Positions 16,421 through 26,742 of a stretch of 64,000 nt of DNA are shown here, one piece after another. The stretch's first letter is position 1. Each line of letters begins with the position of its first letter. The translations under genes were made by a program, and so were the position numbers. Origin of the DNA: Piromyces finnis finn (taxonomy: Eukaryota; Fungi; Neocallimastigomycota); NCBI GenBank assembly GCA_002104945.1, contig MCFH01000043.1, positions 414,763-478,762 on the forward strand. Direction: 5' to 3'. Under the pieces are notes generated by a model. The model made no database searches. It saw only the letters and a list, made by a program, of their open reading frames with translations, and was not told the DNA's origin.

Positions 16421-17216
16421 TTAATTGTTGTCCGATTCAATTTTATTTTGTTCTTTTAATTGATTAAAAAGATCTAATGTAACACTCGCTAAAAGTCCAG
16501 GTATACTTCCATATTGACCAACGAAATAATCTATTCTTTTTTCTAATGATTGAATATACGATTTTCCACCTCCAATTAATTCCATTGAACCAGAATCATT
16601 TGAACTTGAAGCAAAAACAAAACTTTGATTTCCATTTTGACTATACATTGAAGTTAATTTGACACGTCCATCCTGTAAGAAATCAAATCTATAACCTATT
16701 TATTTAAAAAAATTTATTGTTAACAAATAAATTTATATATGATATAGCTAAGCCAATACAATCAAATCACCATAATTATTATTACTACTATTATAATGAA
16801 ATAAAAAAAAAAAAATTATAATCATTTTATATTTACCTAATAAAGAATAAACAACTTCACGATATTCTTTTGATTTTTGTCTAAATACAGTTTTTAAACG
16901 ATCTAATTTCTTTTCTAATTCCTCAATTTTATTATTTTCAATTTCTAATCTTTTATATGTTTCAATTGGAATATTTTCTATATGTTCCTCAGCAACATCA
17001 TCATTATCGTTCATTACTTCATCTATAGATGGATTATCATTTAAGTTATGTTTTTTGATAATTTTTAATAATGCTTTATTTTCATTTCGTAAAGCATCTA
17101 AAGTTGCTTTTCTTATAGAATAATCTTCTAATTCAGGGTTCTTTGCCAATTGTAATACCTTATATTATCATATTGTTATTTTTTTTTTTTTAAAAAAAAA
17201 GAGATAATTTATACAA

Positions 17217-17266
<50 letters not shown>

Positions 17267-20200
17267 GTATTATTATTATTATATAGTATTATTATTATTA
17301 TTATTATTATATTTATATACATTATACTATTACTTACTCTTGTTGTTTCAGGATTATATTCCCCTCTACCTAATGAATATTCCATTTTTTCTACTAATTT
17401 ATCAAGAGAAGCATTTTCTTTTAAAAGCATAGCATTTTTCTTTTTCAAATCTTGGATTTCTATTAAATTAGATTCAATATTTATGATATGTCAGGATAAG
17501 AAATAAACATTAATAAAAGTTATTATTCATAAAAAAATAAATATTAATAATACTATATAAAAAATTATAATCTCAAGTCTATAATTTTACCTTTATCAGC
17601 ATTCAATAATTCTGATGTTAAACTATTGGTATAATTGGAAATAGTTTCATCTTTAAAATCCATGGTTGTTTTATTTTCATCTCTTTCAACAACATCTTTT
17701 TCTAATTCATAAATTCTATTTTGATATTGATTCAACATATCTTGTAATTCTTTTATTCTATTATTTTTTCTTTCTAATTCCATTTTGGTTTCTTCATCAT
17801 GATTTTTCATCGTCATTTCTTCCAAATCATAACTTTTCTATTAATTGATGAAAGGATATACATAAAGATAAATTTATATGTCAGAATGTCAGAATAATTA
17901 AAAACTTTTTCTTTTTATTAATACAAAAGATATTTACTAATTGTTCTTCAAGCATAAGTATTCTACGTTGGGTTAATTCTTTACTTTTTTCTTTATAACT
18001 AATAATTTTTAAATTATTTTGATTATTGGTATATTCCTTTTGATATTTTGAATTAAGTTCATTAACCTTAATAAGGTATATAGATGAGACAACAATATTA
18101 ATTATACATCACAAAATTATTTATTTATAGAATTAACATATATATAAAAGAGGCCTATTATATTTACCTTGTTTTCAAGTTCATTAATATATTCCTGTTG
18201 ACTTGCGAATTTTACATTAAATTTACCTTCTTTTTCTTTCAATAATGCATATTCAATTCTTTGTTCAGTCAATGCTTTAGCTAGATCATGTGGTGAATTA
18301 AAGCCGACCGTATCGTTTTCTTCTAAAAATGATGTCCATTGAATATGCTCATCTAATAATTTAGATTTTTCAATTTCTAATTGAGAAATTTTTTCATGAA
18401 GTTTAGTCATTGCTTTTGCTTTATTTTCTAATGTTTTAATCTCTTCCTTCAAAATTTGAATATTTTCATTTCTTTCTTTATAATAATCATTTTGCTTTTT
18501 CAAATCCTTGTTCTTTTTTTCAATTTTCCGTATAAATTTTAATTGATCTATGATGTATTGTTATTGTTTTATATGTCATTAATTTTTACAATAATTTAAA
18601 TGTTTTAGTAATTAAATATATTTTTATTATATAAGTCAATAAAATTATATAAATACTAAAAAAAAAAAAAATAATAATAATAATAAATAAATAAATAAAA
18701 ATAAAAATTCGTACTTTCTAATTCTTTTTTAATTATATTCATTTCTTCAGTTGATGCATTTTGTTTTAATTTTTTATTTTCTAATTGGGTATCTTTATAT
18801 TTGACTTCAATCTCCTGTAATTGTTTTATTTTTTCGTTTAGTTGTTCTGTTCTTTTATCAAACTATAATTTTATAATATATAATAAGTATATAATCAATA
18901 TATAGATATTAATAATTTGATTTTTTTTTTTTTATTAGTATTATTATTCCATATTATTTAAATTATTAATTGCTTTTATACCTCTTTTCTTATTCTATTG
19001 ATTTCATTTTGATAATTTTTGAAATTACTATTTATTGAATCGTTTAGTTCATTAACACTAATGTTATCTTGTAAATGTTGCTGAGAATTAAAGAGTGCTT
19101 CTTTTAATGAAATAGATTCATTATTAGTTTGATAAATTTCCAATTTAGTTTCATTCTTTCAAATGTATTAAAAATTGAAAAATTATTTTATAAAAAAAAA
19201 AAAAGTTGTTAAAATTTCTTGAAAACTAATGCATATTTATATATATCAATAATTTAAATTTATTATTTAATTACCTTTAAAGTCTTTAATTCTTCTTCCA
19301 ATTTTTCAATTGTTTCTTTACTTTTTAATTCCTTTTCATATAATAATCTTCGAGTAGTTTCTAGATTCTTTATTGCATAAATTATTAGAGATAAAAATAA
19401 TTTAAAAATTAATAAGTAAATAATAATAATAAAAAATGATTTAAAATTTAGAATTCAAATGATTTATTATTATAAAAATTAAAATTTACCTGTTTTTCAA
19501 GATCTAAATCTTGTGTTAATTTTTCATACTCAATATTTTCGATTCTTAGAATATCTATATTATGTTCCAGATTCATATTTTCTTCTATATATTTATTATT
19601 TAATTCAGATATTTTTAATTCATAATCAAGTTTTTGTGCTTCCATTTGATGTTCTAAATCCTTTATTTTCTTTCTTAACTCATACTCAGTTTCTAATTAT
19701 ATATACATATCAAAATTGTAGGTTAATTTAGCTGTGCCTTCATTTATCTAATTTTTAATAACAAAAATAATTGTAAAATACCTATTATCATTGTTTTTTT
19801 ATTACGTAATAAAGGCTTTTTTTTATAAATTTTCATATTAAAAAAAAAAAAAAAAAAAGATTAAATAATTTATTAGAAAAAATATTAATTTAATTTGTAT
19901 ATGATAATAATTTTATATATCATTATTATTGTTGTTATTGTTGTTATTGTTGTTGTTGTTGTTTCGTTGTATGTAAATAATTAGTGTAAGTGGTATAAAA
20001 AGGTTTATATTGCCTACCGAATAAAATGATTGAGGAGTATTCTCTATTTCATCTGAATTTGGAATTTTTGGTGAGACCTTTTCAGTACTACTAGAATTTT
20101 CCTTTTTTTCTTCTTCTTCCTTTTCATATTGCTTTAAATGTTTAACATTATTTAAATAGTTATTTGGTGATACCAGCAATACATCTCTTTTTTTCGTTGA

Positions 20201-20284
20201 CCTAACAAATGGATGATAATTTAAGTTAACTTTATCTTGATTTTCATCAAGTTTCCGTTTTTTATTATTATTTGGTTCATTCAT
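16421..20284 (-). CDS. MAD1: Spindle assembly checkpoint protein Mad1 (multi-exon, long coiled coil plus C-terminal RWD-like domain)
   Basis: Coiled-coil exons throughout; Mad1 motifs LGRGEYNPETTRVLQLAKNP, RLKTVFRQKSKEYREVVYSLLG, DGRVKLTSMY and SIPGLLASVTLDLFNQ. Internal exon boundaries were not all resolved. Confidence 0.92.
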
Positions 20285-20405: not shown

Positions 20406-21013
20406 AATAATTATTTAAATTTCAAAAATTAATTCTTACAACAATGACTTTTCTAGTTATTTTATTATAATTATAATTTTAAAAATAATTTCTTTTATGG
20501 TATTTTAATCTCCATTAATTAAATTTTTTTAATAAAAAATTTAAAAAAACACATAAATTTATAATAATTTTATAAAATAGATTAAAATATCACATGAAGT
20601 CACAAACCAATATTTAATGATAAATTTTTAAATTTTTTATTTTGTCTTTTTTTTTTATTTTATTTTAATAGAATGTGCTTTTTTTTTATTATTATTATTT
20701 TTTTTTTTTTTTTTTTACTTTTTCAATGTCGTCGTTATTATTATATTCAAAAATGATAAAGCTAATGCTTTTTTTTATATTATTTATAATGTAATGTGTG
20801 GGTAAAATTTTTTAAAATATGTAAATGATAATTAAACCTTTTTTTTTTTCTTTTTTTATTCACTACGGAACAGTAAGAAAAAAAAAAAAGTTATTACAAT
20901 ATAAAAAAAAAACTTTTTTTAAAGTTTAATATCTTAATGAAAAAAATAGTGAGGTTCTAATTATTATTTATAATAATGGATGGTATATTACAATTAAATA
21001 TGTTTAAAAGAAA

Positions 21014-23551
21014 TTAAAAGCCTTCTCTCTTTGAGAAAACATCTTCCCATTGAATATAGAAATCGCATGGAACCATAGCAACAATTTGAAGAAGAGACAT
21101 AGCATATTGAGTAGCCATCATTTCTCTTAGTTCTTGACTAATATTTAATATATATATATAATATATAGATTAATTAATCTTTTGACTTTTTTTTTGTAAA
21201 CTTTAATAACTTTTATTTTCCTGAAAAAAAAAAAAAAAAAAATACATACGCAATCTTTTCTTCTCCTAATGTAGTACATTCATCAATAACATCAAAATAG
21301 TTCTTTTTTGTTGGTTCTGGAATAGCCATTCTATACATGAAACTGATTTTTCTATATATCATTTAATAAAATAAAAATTAATTTTTATCCTAAATACAAT
21401 TTAAAAGAAAAAAAATTTTATACTTTTTATCATTAATATTTACTTTGTAATTTCATCCTTTGTTAAACCAACCCACTTAGCAGATGGACAAACTGGTTCA
21501 GTTCTCTTTCCTTCACCCTATTAAGATTCATAAAAAAATAAAAAAAAGTTTTTTTTTTTTAATATTTCATACTATATCAAAAAAAAAAAAAAATTTAAAT
21601 ATATATTTAATATCTTACAGTGGCGTAACCATGCTTTAATGGTAAAACAAATTGATGAACAGCAAGACTAGTAGCATCAGTCATAATTTTAACTGGAATA
21701 CCATTCTTTTCACATGCCTTAGAAACTAAACCAATAAACTTTTGAGTATTGTCATCTAATACATTAGCAAACTTTAAAAATAAAAATAATAATAAAGCAA
21801 TGATGTATAATAAATTATAATTAATTAATATTCTTATTTTCATGGATTCATTTGTATCTACAATACTTTTATATATACTTACGGATATAGCACAAACTGG
21901 CTTTCCATCCTTTTTACATTGTTCAAAGAACTTTATTTCCTTTAATAAGAATAAGAAACTAGAACTTTGGACAAGTAAGAGACAGCTTAAATTTTCTGGG
22001 AATTCGAAATCTAATTTAATTTTAATTAATAAATGAAAATATGTGAATATTTTAAATATCAACTAGAATTTAAAATAGAGTATCATAAATAGGGTGTTTA
22101 TAAGTATTAAATATTTCTTACCTTCAACCTTATATTCATCAGCATTTGGAAGTGGATAAACCTTATTTCAATTATATATATATAAAATTAAATTATTTTA
22201 GGTTTACAATTTCCTAAATTTATAAAAGATAAAATACGCTATTCATTAAATTATTACCATGTATTTTCCTTCAGTATCTAAAACACTGCAATCCTGCTTT
22301 TGAACAAAGACATCACCACATAACATTGGGAATTCAACATCATCCTATCATTAAAAAAAAATTAAAAATGATTAAATATAATTTTATAAAAAGTTAAATC
22401 AACATCACACTAAATAAATAAATACTTACAATGTGAATGATTTGTCTATCACGATCAAGATAATCTAAGCAACTGTCAACAATAGTGGCAAGTTCTTTTT
22501 CATCCTTCCAAATTTGTGGATGAGATTCTCTGATATAACTATAATATTTAATATTAATAATCTTTGTTAGTTTATCATCTTTAAATTAAAAATAATTTTA
22601 ATCTTAATTTATTAATAAAATTAAAAAATAAATAAATAAATAAAAAACCTATAAGTCATTGTAAAGCCATATTCTAAGGCTTCTTCAAGACAATGATAAA
22701 CATGTTGATGTTGAGCTATAATTAATCAATTTAAAACATAAGTATAGACAAAATAAGAAAAAAAAAATATTAAAATGTTGAAATAGCGTGTATGAAGTTT
22801 ATAGCTTTATTACAAATTTAAAATATTAAAATATTTTTTTTAACTTTTTTATTATAATACATACCATATAACTTAGTGTTAGAAACCATGTTAACTTCTC
22901 TTAATAAAGGATATTCACCCTTTTCATTTTTTCTATTATTTATAAATAATACCAAGTATTAATTTCATATGAAGAAATTATTTTAAATAAATTCAATGAA
23001 AAAAAAGTATAACGGATAAGATAATATTAATATTATCCATAAAATTATTTTCAAAAAAAAAAAAATGGATATTTAATAAAAATAACAAATTAGCCATCGT
23101 GAAAAAATATATTTTATAAAATATATTTTCACATACTCTTTAGAAGTATCATAATAAACACATGGAAGGGCGTGTGGTCTTCCATAGGCAAAACAAGCAA
23201 CACTTTTAGTCATTAATTCAGTAATGTGTTTCTTTAAAGTTTCTCTAATGATAACAAAAAATATAAATATATTATAATAATTAAAAAAAAAAATTAATTT
23301 TTAATTTAAAACATTGATTAACAAAAATAATAAAAAAGCTTTTTAATTATTTTTAATTAAAAACTTTTAAATGACTACAGGATATATAATAAATAGGTAT
23401 ATTCTTTTTTATTATTATTATTATTATTATGAAAAAAAAAAAAATAAAATGGTAAAAAAAATATTATATAAAACATTTACGGTGTCTTTTTGTTGAGAAT
23501 TTCAGCAATTTCATCAGTTGGAGTATTAGAAATAACTTCTTCTTGAATCAT
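21014..23551 (-). CDS. Spo11/DNA topoisomerase VI subunit A-fold protein (369 aa, 12 exons) with degenerate catalytic motifs; probable pseudo-enzyme
   Basis: Exons 23551-23481, 23244-23137, 22932-22865, 22715-22649, 22538-22430, 22344-22258, 22161-22122, 22010-21883, 21771-21619, 21517-21444, 21330-21250, 21137-21014. Total 1110 nt, all GT-AG, phases consistent, no internal stop. By-eye match to Spo11/Top6A: KLYAQ..(helix)..TMTYSYIRESHPQIWKDEKELATIVDSCLDYLDRDRQIIHI; MLCGDV; CLLLVQSSS; CAISFANVLDDNTQKF; IPVKIMTDATS; CPSAKWVGLTKDEI; QELREMMATQYAMSLLQI. Confidence 0.8.
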
Positions 23552-24409
23552 TTTGTAATATTAATTCCTTTAAAACCTTTTTGTCTTAATTTTTATTGAA
23601 GTTTATAGTTTTTTTATAATTTTTTTATTATAGTAATTATATATTTTAATTACTCTATCAATTATAATTTTTTTTTTCTTTTTAGTTTTAATTTTTTAAA
23701 ACTATATATGTATATTTATAGTATAATTAATTTAATTATATAAACTAATTACTAATAACACTTTTTATTTTTTTTTTATACTTTATTTTACTTTCTAAAA
23801 AGTATATATAAAAGTTATAAAAAGGTAGAAATGAAAAAAGATAAACTATCAATATAAATGAATAATTAAATTTAAACTTTTTTATCTTTATTAATTAATA
23901 TATTATTTTGTTAATTGATAATTTTATTTATTATTACTTTGGTAAGATAATTAAATTAAAAATGTTTAAAAATTTGTTTAGTCTATCAAAAAAAAAAAAA
24001 AAAAAGATTTTTAGTTTATAACAATACATGAACAATAGTATTAAGATGGAAAAAGATGCTTTTTTTTTAATTAAATAAAAATACTATATAATAAGGAGGA
24101 AATACTTTTTTTTTTTTTCTTAAAAAACATTTATACAACATATAAAATAATGATTATGAAAATCACTTTTTAAGTCTATATTTCTGCAATGCATTATTAG
24201 TAATTCTATTTATTTTTCATGCAATATTACAATACCATTTATTAAATCATTTTCCATTAGTTTTTTCTTTAAATAATAAATAACCAATAGTTTAATATTT
24301 TTAAAAAATAATAACTTTTAGACATCTTTTTTTTCTTCTCTATGACAATTTTATTTAATAGTCTAACTCATCGTTTAAACCTTTACACATCCACAATATG
24401 AATTCTTCT

Positions 24410-24477: not shown

Positions 24478-26200
24478 GTATAATAATGGATGGTAGAATG
24501 AAATGTATAACTTTTTTTTTTTTTTAGTTTAATTTATTAATGTTGTTATTGCTTTTTTTTAAAGTTGATATTAAATTTTTTTTCTGTATTTAATTAAAAA
24601 ATTGTTTATAAATTTTGATACAATATATTAACAATTATATTATAATAAATAGAATATAAAGAATAATATATAGAAATAATAATATCACAATTATTTAATT
24701 AAAAAATTTATACTTTAATAAATTGATTTCTCTTAATTAAATTTACACATTTTTTTATTTAAGTTCAGTAATTTCTATGCATCAAAATGAAGTATGGATG
24801 ATCAAACAAACAAGTTAAAAAAAAAAGAAAGACGTAATTAAAAAGATTGTTATTGTTGCATATTGTTGTTTTTGTTGTCATGTTGAATTTCAACACACTT
24901 TTATCAATGTTTATATTTCATTAAAAAAAAAAAATAAATATTTTATGGTTTCTCCTATGGTTAGGATTTTTTTATGTTTCAAAAATGTGTTTAAAAGCAA
25001 AGAAAATAAAGAATAGTTTAAAACGATTAATTTCACATTTTTGAAATATATTAAATAATAAAGTAAATATTTTTTATAATTATGGCATATACACTTTTTA
25101 TATATAATTTAAGTCATATTTATATACAATATAATAATTTATCATTCATTGTTTTTTGTATAAATGTTTATGATAAAGATAAAAATGTTAACACTATACA
25201 AAAAAAAAGTTTTTTCATACAATAATTCATTATATTTATGTTTAGAATAAAAAAAATATTATAAAAGACTCATAATAATATTTTTCTCTATAATATTAAT
25301 GCTATTAATAAAAATATTATTAAAAATATAAAAATATGTAATATATTTTTTGTATTAGTTTTTTTTTTATTTGTTTATTAAATAAAAAGTATAAAAAAAA
25401 ATACTAATCGATATTACTATGTTTCATTATATTTCACAATAATGAATTAATAAAAATTAGGTTGTAAATATTCAATAATAATAGATAAAATATTATAATA
25501 ATAAACCTAATAACAATATTAACCACAATACCAACAATACCAACAACAATAATAATAGTAATATTAATAATAAAATTAAAAATTATACATTTATTATTGT
25601 TATTATTAATAGTGTTAAAATAATAATACATTATTATGATGTATATTTATTATATAATATAATATTATAATTATCATTATTGATTGAATTTAGATGGTAT
25701 GATAATAAACTTAATAATAAAAAACAATTAATCAAATATAAGGAATAAAACAATAAAAATAACTGTTTATTTAATAGTCAAATATAGGATATTTTATAGT
25801 TAAGATGGTATTTTATAAAAGAAAACATAGTTAACTCTTTTATTGGATATATTTAATACATTATATAATACATAATGTATTGAAATGTAGTATAGAGAAA
25901 ATTTTATAATAATAATTTATAATATACAAAAGCATTCCTTCCACGTGTAGAAAATAAAAAAAGTAAACAATATTTTAATATGAGTAGAAATTAAAAGGCA
26001 TATTAAAAAAAAGAGCAATATTTATTTAAAATTCTATGAACAATAAATTGAAAGCATTTGCTGTAATTAGAAAGAAATTGTGATTAGAAGCATGAATGAA
26101 TAGGTATTTAGTTAATAATTAATTAATTAATTAATTAATTAATAACAATAATAATAATAAACACAATAATAAATATAATAACAAATAATAATAACAACAG

Positions 26201-26471
<271 letters not shown>

Positions 26472-26742
26472 CAACAACAACAACAGATAATAATAACAAA
26501 AGCAATAATGCAATGATAATAAAAATAATAGATTAACTGTTAAAGAGAATAGAAAAGTAAATAATGTATAAATTTTTTTTTTTTGTTAACAAAGGTAAAG
26601 AAAGGTATAAATAGTAAATATTAGTCCACTTTAAATAAATAATATGTTAAGTAAATAATCCACATAAATAAAAAGATTATTAAATTTTTTTAATAATTAT
26701 TAATGACCAAAATATCAATTGCTTATTTATCCATTTTATTGT

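Follow-up and report, generated by a model that had tools for sequence, protein, structure and literature searches.

The locus and its transcript

The window analysed here is a stretch of 64,000 nucleotides of the genome of the anaerobic gut fungus Piromyces finnis, and the gene under study lies on its minus strand, running from position 23551 to 21014. Twelve exons are joined to a stop-free coding sequence of 1131 nt, which encodes a protein of 376 amino acids plus the stop codon. All of the introns (11/11) begin with GT and end with AG, and an in-frame stop precedes the ATG by four codons. The exons and the 3' untranslated region are listed below in the order of transcription.

23481..23551, minus strand: exon 1, ATG at 23551-23549, residues 1-24; N-terminal tail; colinear with cDNA L004 and identical in P0008
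23137..23244, minus strand: exon 2, residues 24-60; long N-terminal helix (H24-43 of the model)
22865..22932, minus strand: exon 3, residues 60-83; exon 3/4 junction taken from loose-end letters of the RNA contigs
22649..22715, minus strand: exon 4, residues 83-105; HQHVYHC motif on the helix of the CAP/winged-helix domain; conserved Arg replaced by S105
22430..22538, minus strand: exon 5, residues 105-141; catalytic Tyr position occupied by E109 (codon 22528-22526)
22258..22344, minus strand: exon 6, residues 142-170; metagenomic orthologs 100% identical here
22122..22161, minus strand: exon 7, residues 171-184
21883..22010, minus strand: exon 8, residues 184-226; first strand of the Toprim domain; catalytic Glu replaced by Q198 (codon 21969-21967)
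21619..21771, minus strand: exon 9, residues 227-277; FANVLD in place of GKGQPD, D258-A-T260 (21678-21670) in place of DxD; start of the PF21180 match
21444..21517, minus strand: exon 10, residues 278-302; PSAKWVGL, counterpart of the KWLGL motif
21250..21351, minus strand: exon 11, residues 302-336
21014..21137, minus strand: exon 12, residues 336-376 and stop; last Toprim motif with A348 and S350 for the conserved Lys and Glu; C-terminal tail nearly invariant
20949..21013, minus strand: 3' untranslated region, from the extent of the RNA contig, whose record begins at 20949

The codon of S105 is split across the junction of exons 4 and 5. The first-pass annotation, which was made from the sequence alone, had proposed twelve GT-AG exons and a stop-free frame, and this structure was confirmed by RNA contigs and by intronless metatranscriptome cDNAs; its protein length of 369 amino acids was slightly miscounted. 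The residue numbers it gave for S105, E109, Q198 and D258/T260, together with all seven of the peptides it quoted, were found in place. It had also noticed that the ORF track displays only a fragment of the gene: the list holds a single 151-aa ORF (21607-22062), since the reading frame continues through intron 8 without meeting a stop.

RNA contigs of 1322 and 1326 nt, assembled from two runs, reproduced the splice junctions of exons 4-12 and, via a loose end, the joining of exon 4 to exon 3, so the RNA-seq check that had been suggested supports the splice model. These junctions cover the gene from exons 3/4 to 12, and for exons 1-3 the support comes from the cDNA orthologs and the identical GenBank protein. 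The intronless metatranscriptome contig L004 (positions 272-1399) encodes a colinear and gap-free ortholog of 376 amino acids. The spliced model is 100% identical to P0008, that is GenBank entry ORX44886.1 of Piromyces finnis, which carries the automatic UniProt name of a Top6A/Spo11 TOPRIM domain protein; the gene had been called hidden, a description that does not hold for a locus already annotated. The protein searches reported below were run with P0008, identical to the spliced product, and with the cDNA locus L004.

Full-length spliced contigs occurred in the isolate RNA runs at a word depth of 587-783 (the level of expression is given here as contig word depth, not normalised), and transcripts were present in several metatranscriptome and Logan assemblies as well. 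The 12 exons belong to an ordinary nuclear gene of Piromyces finnis that is transcribed.

Relationship to the Top6A/Spo11 family

Homology to Spo11/Top6A over the full length had been claimed from motif order and spacing, and the profile, language-model and structural searches agree on Top6A/Spo11 as the family. All 11 orthologs matched the Top6A/Spo11-type Toprim family of Pfam (PF21180), whose gathering cut-off is 24.1, with scores of 24.8-26.7 bits, and neither the protein nor its orthologs matched PF04406 (TP6A_N, the 5Y-CAP/winged-helix domain), even at E <10; thus only the Toprim half of the anticipated Pfam result was obtained. The NCBIfam profile of Top6A (NF003335) was matched with E values from 2.6e-6 to 1.5e-3, residues 52-319 being colinear with profile positions 50-307 over about 260 residues. 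When the ortholog profile was compared by hhalign with 28 Pfam-verified archaeal Top6A sequences, the alignment began at residue 49, extended over 237 columns and reached a probability of 94.6% (E 7e-8); the reversed control gave 0.9%. The C-terminal half alone retained a probability of 78% (E 1.8e-5), and the N-terminal half alone was not significant (3%, E 0.015).

The ESM features of the whole protein gave a score of 0.93 with 196 shared features, and every top set was Top6A/Spo11; residues 1-185 pointed toward TP6A_N clusters (0.92, 191 shared). From the single sequence AlphaFold gave no usable model (pLDDT 41). With an alignment as input, AF2 produced a model with pLDDT 74.6 and pTM 0.72, and as evidence of family it is partly circular, since Top6A sequences were included in the alignment. 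A Foldseek search against the PDB returned E <0.001 only for ten chains of Topo VI-A/Spo11, and among the Swiss-Prot models SPO11/Top6A occupied all of the top 30 places. VIA-align superposed 202 residues of the model on 1D3Y at an rmsd of 2.3 A (Z 20.9), and the score for yeast Spo11 (8URQ) was Z 16.5, so that the structural check foreseen for this protein turned out in favour of the family; whole-chain alignments were obtained to 9O0G and 8URQ. Other folds scored lower (MksG Z 12.1, JetD Z 10.8, remaining Toprim proteins at most 7.6). Once the canonical Top6A/Spo11 clusters were excluded, JetD/MksG were the nearest families in the feature searches (scores 0.77-0.79). Horizontal transfer of a defence gene of the JetD/MksG type was considered and rejected as the nearest relationship: the scores are far below those of Top6A/Spo11, and the intron positions are common to genera.

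Several simpler searches were not informative. Exon-by-exon searches against Pfam and the PDB gave no matches, the pieces being too short, and phmmer and hmmsearch runs with the protein and the ortholog profile found nothing relevant among the PDB sequences. A similarity of the N-terminal part to alphavirus macro domains in the PDB sequence search (E 1.5) was dismissed as noise. HMMER with the 130-aa read-through of exon 8, intron and exon 9 matched only a genomic fragment of 96 amino acids, which led to the orthologous contigs.

As judged from these profiles and models, the protein descends from the Top6A/Spo11 family and appears to have kept its whole architecture, with predicted N-terminal helix, CAP/winged-helix domain, small beta domain and Toprim domain. 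The assignment of the CAP domain is drawn from the colinear full-length profile alignments, the language-model features and the AF2 model.

Catalytic residues and conservation

The replacement of the nucleophile and of the metal ligands, which had been claimed from the motifs, was reproduced in a residue map based on alignments to the 28 verified Top6A sequences. The CAP-domain Arg is S105 in both the MAFFT and the hhalign alignment, and the Toprim Glu is Q198 in both, EKDA having become QSSS. The two methods disagree around the catalytic Tyr, which is E/D109 in MAFFT and falls in a gap in hhalign, and they differ by one residue at DxD, which corresponds to D258-A-T260 in MAFFT and is shifted in hhalign to A259 and S261. 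The first Asp of DxD is thus kept as D258 in the MAFFT alignment and the second is replaced. Furthermore GKGQPD is changed to FANVLD, the Arg of GxGxPD..TR to Q236, and the C-terminal K..E pair to A348 and S350. Two invariant tyrosines, Y104 and Y106, stand only 3-5 residues away from the catalytic position, and neither was aligned to the catalytic Tyr.

Archaeal Top6A has 60 columns with a conservation of at least 89%; only 16 of these are retained, none of them catalytic except for the first Asp. Some residues of structural motifs persist, namely R136, D232, T235 and K291-W292-G294. Read from the alignments, the signature of a functional Spo11/Topo VI-A (RxxxY, the Mg2+-binding Toprim acids and the other invariant motifs) is absent.

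These substitutions are fixed in all 11 full-length orthologs seen, which come from at least three genera and are 85-94% identical without insertions or deletions; a search for such orthologs in other anaerobic fungi had been recommended, and it found the replaced residues invariant. Exon boundaries are identical in metagenomic genomic contigs of a relative. The ratio dN/dS is 0.08-0.11 at dS 0.35-0.68, and the frames are intact, where decay of a pseudogene had been expected to leave frameshifts or stops and a dN/dS near 1. Because of the high identity without indels and the low dN/dS, the gene is to be regarded as a selected pseudoenzyme and not as a decaying pseudogene, in line with the earlier proposal that selection has kept it. 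The mean column identity of the orthologs is 93%. Invariance is highest at the two ends (89% of residues 1-47 and 87% of the C-terminal tail) and lower in the Toprim domain (68%). Word-indexed searches with the protein and the profile recovered its own 90% cluster only, with no relative seen beyond the anaerobic fungi, and a search with an Asgard Top6A profile that was aimed at eukaryotic or fungal SPO11 had only Asgard proteins among the matches listed.

Possible function and comparison with known systems

The protein is strongly acidic. Its pI is 5.06 and its net charge is -17, as against a median pI of 8.7 and a net charge of +4 in archaeal Top6A (n=28), and all 11 orthologs lie between -15 and -20 with pI about 5.1; a negative net charge is compatible with a local basic DNA-binding surface. 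The basic residues of the family R103, K210, R216, R242, R333 and K361 (L054 numbering) have become S, S, L, Q, A/S/N and A, respectively. The long N-terminal helix, predicted by AF2 at residues 24-43, is highly conserved. In Top6A and Spo11 this helix docks the B subunit, and we know of no Top6B partner in fungi. For the Topo VI accessory proteins BIN4 and RHL1, Brinkmeier et al. 2022 (PMC9665070) report no fungal homolog.

Taken as a whole, the best explanation is a selected, dead Top6A/Spo11 homolog with a non-cutting, partner-binding role, to which we assign a probability of roughly 0.55. That the protein is a selected and catalytically dead member of the family is in itself highly probable; that it works as a protein-binding scaffold is a more tentative proposal. 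On this view the pseudoenzyme, which has lost the DNA-cleavage chemistry of its family with the fold retained, would act through the binding of partners instead of the cutting of DNA, probably without strong DNA binding. The N-terminal tail and helix and the C-terminal tail are its most conserved parts. Transcripts occur in ordinary cultures and in gut metatranscriptomes, which makes a task restricted to meiosis improbable. Spo11 dimers have composite active sites, according to a recent preprint (bioRxiv 10.64898/2026.01.16.699991). Were the protein to pair with a genuine SPO11, the heterodimer would be inert at both composite sites and could serve as a blocker or regulator, not as a nickase. 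The first-pass annotation had suggested a heterodimer that turns double-strand breaks into nicks; this is unlikely and at odds with the composite active site of type IIB enzymes, because the Tyr half and the Toprim half are both lost, which leaves two dead sites. A wider formulation, for which we see some chance but which we regard as doubtful, is that anaerobic gut fungi recruited an acidic, cleavage-less protein of Spo11/Top6A fold into a constitutive and constrained role, either as an inhibitor of SPO11 dimers or B subunits or in a non-cleavage process.

Among the alternatives, the protein might be a decoy that forms heterodimers with meiotic SPO11 or titrates a B-like subunit by its N-terminal helix, and so limits breaks, possibly in vegetative nuclei. 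The complete architecture, including the most conserved helix, and the death of both halves of the composite site would suit such a regulator, as would the presence of meiosis genes such as DMC1 in anaerobic fungi though no sexual cycle has been seen (PMC6883316), but the high, apparently constitutive expression and the very strong conservation exceed what the regulator of a rarely used pathway would need, and we consider it unlikely. An architectural factor that binds or bends DNA through the old Top6A groove without cleaving it, as also suggested earlier, would agree with the fold of a DNA-binding enzyme and with the retained R136, D232, T235 and K291-W292-G294; the acidic charge of every ortholog against the basic archaeal median, together with the replacement of six family-conserved basic residues, disfavours it and makes it a slightly less likely candidate than the decoy. 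It is rather improbable that the protein is a neo-functionalised enzyme or ligand binder, with the pocket of Q198-S-S-S, D258-A-T-S, H265 and K272-H273, or the HQHVYHC helix, as a new site. The replacements are indeed polar instead of random and are invariant across genera, new invariant residues (H85, H87, H90, C91) lie on the CAP helix, and conservation is high with expression in ordinary cultures. However, the idea is purely inferential, at 93% mean column identity invariance singles out no site, and the profile and feature searches gave no similarity to other enzyme families.

The invariant Y104 and Y106 adjoin the catalytic position, D258 is kept and the alignments differ locally, from which one could argue for a still-active, unorthodox Spo11 with one of these tyrosines and a reduced metal site. 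Against this, no ortholog has retained the partner Arg, the Glu of the Toprim domain, the second Asp or the K..E motif, the charge is acidic, and the catalytic Tyr is common to all three plant SPO11 homologs (PMC12203943), so this reading is very improbable. Pseudogene decay, or a likeness to Spo11 that arose by chance, to which a Pfam score barely over the threshold and the missing TP6A_N match could point, is refuted for practical purposes by the intact frames in 11 orthologs of several genera, the dN/dS values, the abundant spliced transcripts and the several independent lines that support homology.

Spo11 is viewed as starting meiotic recombination almost universally and with a uniform function. 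A dead, selected and well-expressed member of the family might act in nature to regulate break formation, or might exemplify reuse of the type IIB A-subunit fold elsewhere. If the inhibitor reading is true, meiotic breaks would be suppressed in a lineage without observed sex, by means of poisoned SPO11 dimers or a sequestered B-like subunit. Our literature searches found no paper describing this protein, in agreement with the earlier remark that no description of such a paralog was known; within the literature searched it would rank as the first conserved Spo11-family pseudoenzyme to be described, provided that the inhibitor or non-cleavage role is true. The finding is tempered by the fact that the gene model and its automatic domain label are already public. 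A recent survey of the Spo11 family discarded tyrosine-less sequences by design (PMC11302465), a filter that would remove proteins of this kind. The sexual cycle of the phylum Neocallimastigomycota lacks experimental confirmation (PMC6883316), and the cleavage reaction of SPO11 can now be reconstituted in vitro (PMC11922746).

The best structural and profile matches of the protein are those to Top6A (1D3Y, 2ZBK, 2Q2E, 9O0G), with Z 18.6-21.2 and rmsd 2.3-2.7 A, the alignments spanning about 200-210 residues of the beta and Toprim part. The spacing after the catalytic position is that of the Asgard Top6A proteins L025 and L037, and the insert of 16 residues that the crenarchaeal-type Top6A proteins carry is absent. 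Unlike Top6A, it keeps a mere 16 of the 60 highly conserved columns, and no catalytic one beyond the first Asp. It resembles Spo11 (yeast 8URQ/8URU, mouse Q9WTK8) in its length class of about 360-400 amino acids and in the succession of N-terminal helix, CAP/WHD and Toprim domain, with a structural Z of 16-16.5 and a Foldseek E of 6.8e-14 to the model of mouse SPO11, whereas sequence identity to Spo11 is only 12-16%. It differs from Spo11 in its acidic charge, in the loss of the catalytic Tyr and Arg, in the changes of Glu to Gln, DxD to DAT and GKGxPD to FANVLD, and in being expressed in ordinary cultures and gut metatranscriptomes and not only in meiosis.

In plants and protists two Spo11-family proteins per genome, SPO11-1 and SPO11-2, may act as a heterodimer (PMC12203943, PMC13143177). 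All three plant SPO11 homologs keep the catalytic Tyr (PMC12203943), whereas the Piromyces protein has lost both Tyr and metal site. The splice isoform SPO11-alpha, which lacks the N-terminal helix and is described in PMC9665070 as predicted to be inactive and possibly regulatory, is likewise a form of Spo11 without predicted catalysis. SPO11-alpha has lost the helix that binds the B subunit and kept the active-site residues, and the Piromyces protein has kept the helix and lost the active site. The Toprim-type fold is also common to JetD and MksG of the Wadjet and MksBEFG systems (Z 10.8-12.1). JetD and MksG serve bacteria as defence nucleases and have an active Toprim site; in contrast, the Piromyces protein is encoded by a gene with introns, has a dead site, was seen only in anaerobic fungi and is much closer to Top6A/Spo11.

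Gene structure, expression and selection

When the minus strand of 20900-23700 was translated in three frames, a chain of short stop-free segments was obtained which, joined at GT..AG, forms a Spo11/Top6A-like gene of twelve exons (23551..21014) with a CDS of 1131 nt, i.e. 376 amino acids and a stop. The exon count, the GT-AG junctions and the stop-free frame of the first-pass annotation were thus recovered, while its length of 369 residues has to be corrected to 376; the seven peptides it quoted, as well as S105, E109, Q198 and D258/T260, lie exactly where it had placed them.

Exons and intron 8 of the Spo11/Top6A-like gene (all exons by GT..AG joining)
23551-23481, minus, exon 1
23244-23137, minus, exon 2
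22932-22865, minus, exon 3, reached by RNA loose ends
22715-22649, minus, exon 4, RNA contigs
22538-22430, minus, exon 5, RNA contigs
22344-22258, minus, exon 6, RNA contigs
22161-22122, minus, exon 7, RNA contigs
22010-21883, minus, exon 8, RNA contigs
21772-21882, minus, intron 8, 111 nt
21771-21619, minus, exon 9, RNA contigs
21517-21444, minus, exon 10, RNA contigs
21351-21250, minus, exon 11, RNA contigs
21137-21014, minus, exon 12, RNA contigs

The mechanical ORF list contains, as had been remarked, only a fragment of this gene, a single ORF of 151 amino acids (21607-22062), because intron 8 is in frame and stop-free and fuses exons 8 and 9. In a relative, metagenome gene calling has taken the same read-through for a 96-aa 'protein' (P0001). 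It is solely from the ORF track that the gene is hidden, as had been claimed more generally: the spliced model is 100% identical to the GenBank protein ORX44886.1 of Piromyces finnis, hence the gene is already annotated and the DNA comes from P. finnis or a nearly identical strain. In a homolog search it fell into a single cluster (29 members at 90% identity), including ORY33335.1 and KAG4088482.1 of Neocallimastix, ORX80552.1 of Anaeromyces robustus, fragments from Piromyces sp. E2 and a Pecoramyces model, which UniProt names automatically as Top6A/Spo11 TOPRIM domain proteins. The query was the protein of L004, the one contig, intronless, found by a metagenome scan with exon 9; its positions 272-1399 encode a colinear 376-aa ortholog (87% identical, gap-free), and thus all eleven junctions are independently confirmed.

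Four RNA-type runs, all from one organism, contained roughly 0.3 of the words sampled from the 2.8-kb stretch, as expected of a spliced message. Two runs gave RNA contigs, 1322 and 1326 nt long, that match predicted exons 4-12 exactly (stretch 20900-22831); the parts they skip are CT..AC on the plus strand, that is GT..AG on the minus strand, and their loose-end letters continue into exon 3. Where exons 4 and 5 meet, the contigs seem to be shifted by 5 nt; TATAG is present on both sides, so the placement is ambiguous and the mRNA is the same either way. Spliced full-length transcripts reached a word depth of 587-783, a non-normalised measure, in isolate RNA runs, and were also seen in several metatranscriptome or Logan assemblies, which suggests that expression is substantial and extends beyond meiosis.

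Eleven full-length orthologs share 85-94% identity with zero indels over 376 columns. Nei-Gojobori estimates between the CDS and three cDNA contigs (L004, L125, L127) gave dN/dS of 0.08-0.11 at dS of 0.35-0.68, in agreement with the earlier proposal that selection maintains the gene. In three genomic contigs of a relative the exon boundaries are the same and the introns have diverged, which argues against recent transfer; the intact orthologs, the low dN/dS and the common boundaries together exclude pseudogene decay.

Directly downstream, on the minus strand, lies a MAD1-type mitotic checkpoint gene (16748-20284), two exon ORFs of which match Pfam PF05557 (E 7e-14, 5e-9); this neighbour is uninformative on the function of the Spo11-like gene. 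A (TAA)n microsatellite at 26140-26530 (~129 copies, 90% matches) explains the pseudo-ORFs of poly-Ile and poly-Leu that the ORF list contains.

Relationship to Top6A and Spo11

Separate exon pieces had no match in Pfam or PDB. Of the two Pfam domains proposed for checking, PF21180 (TOP6A-Spo11_Toprim) was found in 11/11 orthologs at 24.8-26.7 bits, just over the 24.1-bit cut-off, and PF04406 (TP6A_N) gave no match in the full-length protein or its orthologs, even at E below 10. The full-length Top6A model NF003335 of NCBIfam aligned residues 52-319 with profile positions 50-307 (E 2.6e-6 to 1.5e-3).

To obtain family members for comparison, prokaryotic genomes were scanned with a degenerate EKDA...DxDPxG pattern; ten extracted ORFs were verified by Pfam (E 1e-58 to 1e-71) and 28 were aligned. 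Against these, the profile of the 11 fungal orthologs reached an hhalign probability of 94.6% (E 7e-8, 237 colinear columns, 49-302), with 0.9% for reversed fungal sequences, 78% (E 1.8e-5) for the C-terminal half and 3% for the N-terminal half. By protein-language-model features the nearest clusters were all Top6A/Spo11 (score 0.93, 196/256 features in common), and residues 1-185 alone met TP6A_N clusters (0.92, 191 shared); with the canonical families left out scores fell to at most 0.82, the best named being JetD-like (0.77-0.79).

AlphaFold reached a pLDDT of 41 from the single sequence, and 74.6 (pTM 0.72) with an alignment of the 11 orthologs and 28 Top6A, a model with some circularity, as its input included Top6A sequences. 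Ten Topo VI-A/Spo11 chains were its sole Foldseek matches in PDB with E <0.001 (8e-11 to 9e-7), SPO11/Top6A made up all of the best 30 Swiss-Prot models, and the best 30 AFDB clusters were DNA topoisomerase or Spo11, save six unnamed and one labelled cyclin-dependent kinase. VIA-align gave Z 20.9 to 1D3Y (rmsd 2.3 A, 202 residues), 21.2 to the whole chain of 9O0G, 16.5 to yeast Spo11 8URQ, 12.1 to MksG, 10.8 to JetD and at most 7.6 to remaining Toprim proteins. The model and the sequence-only evidence agree on the family: we regard homology as established for the Toprim half and as supported, less rigorously, for the CAP half.

The comparison sequences yielded further observations. Heimdallarchaeal Top6A (L037:1915-3321, P0017-P0040) is uniformly 469 aa, with an N-terminal extension of ~75-100 aa absent from other archaeal Top6A, and several carry the JGI label 'meiotic recombination protein SPO11'; a homolog search with an Asgard Top6A profile returned Asgard Top6A only, among the matches listed. 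P0089, an Asgard archaeal protein of 463 aa, combines the ubiquitin-family domains PF00240 and PF11976 with TP6A_N and the Toprim domain of Top6A, a domain content that suggests a fusion of a ubiquitin-like protein with Top6A. A 359-aa ORF of Methanolapillus millepedarum (L072:6818-7894) with EKDA...DxDPxG has no Pfam family at E <=0.001, and about twenty bacterial ORFs (~270-330 aa, pattern at residue 95-160) with it may match by chance or be Toprim proteins that have escaped recognition.

Replacement of the catalytic residues

The MAFFT alignment bore out the earlier residue map, in which most catalytic positions are changed.

Archaeal residues (numbering of the Top6A L054) and fungal counterparts by MAFFT
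R103: S105
Y107: E/D109
Q132: E/D118
S135: L121
E209-K-D-A: Q198-S-S-S
G-K-G-Q-P-D: F-A-N-V-L-D
R242: Q236
D261-x-D263-P: D258-A-T260-S261
G266: A263
K361: A348
E363: S350

S105 and Q198 were placed alike by hhalign, which leaves an 8-residue gap across the YY motif and differs by one residue at DxD; whichever alignment is used, the tyrosine and at least one Asp are absent from the aligned positions, with the caveat that Y104 and Y106 are invariant near the former nucleophile position. The replacements are invariant in the 11 orthologs, save E or D at 109. Of the 60 columns with 89% conservation or more across archaeal Top6A, only 16 are kept, mostly Gly, Pro, Leu or Asp. Since the motif residues are exon-internal or at an RNA-confirmed junction, and reading into intron 4 gave no RxxYY, alternative splicing restores none of the motifs in the transcripts seen.

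Possible function and comparison with known family members

These results support a Top6A/Spo11 family member that is expressed, strongly selected, lineage-restricted and catalytically dead. The case is firmer than at first reading, now that splicing, homology, residue loss and purifying selection have been shown; its novelty is lower than was claimed because the gene model and an automatic domain name were already public.

As to function, we infer a non-catalytic pseudoenzyme that would act by partner binding. Invariance is highest in residues 1-47 (89%), a low-confidence tail and long helix in the model, and in the C-terminal 31 residues (87%), with 68% for the Toprim domain; in Top6A/Spo11 the long N-terminal helix docks the B subunit. 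It had been suggested that a Spo11 heterodimer with this protein could produce nicks instead of breaks. The active site of type IIB enzymes is established to be composite: one protomer contributes the Tyr and its partner the metal site of the Toprim domain (10.64898/2026.01.16.699991); as the fungal protein has neither half, both sites of such a heterodimer would be inactive, so nicking is unlikely and a blocking role possible.

Full-text literature searches returned no paper on the fungal protein or any Spo11-family pseudoenzyme, consistent with the view that no such paralog had been described. The three plant SPO11 homologs all have the catalytic tyrosine (2025 review, PMC12203943), the paralogs described by Brinkmeier et al. 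2022 (PMC9665070) have catalytic sites that are conserved, and Allen and Maxwell 2024 dropped sequences without the tyrosine (PMC11302465), a filter by which the fungal protein would be excluded. Anaerobic fungi have meiosis genes such as DMC1 and no demonstrated sexual cycle (Wilken et al. 2019, PMC6883316). The fungal orthologs are all acidic, at a pI near 5.06 and with net charges between -15 and -20, whereas the medians for archaeal Top6A (n=28) are pI 8.7 and net charge +4, and several basic residues conserved across the Top6A family are replaced in the fungal protein.
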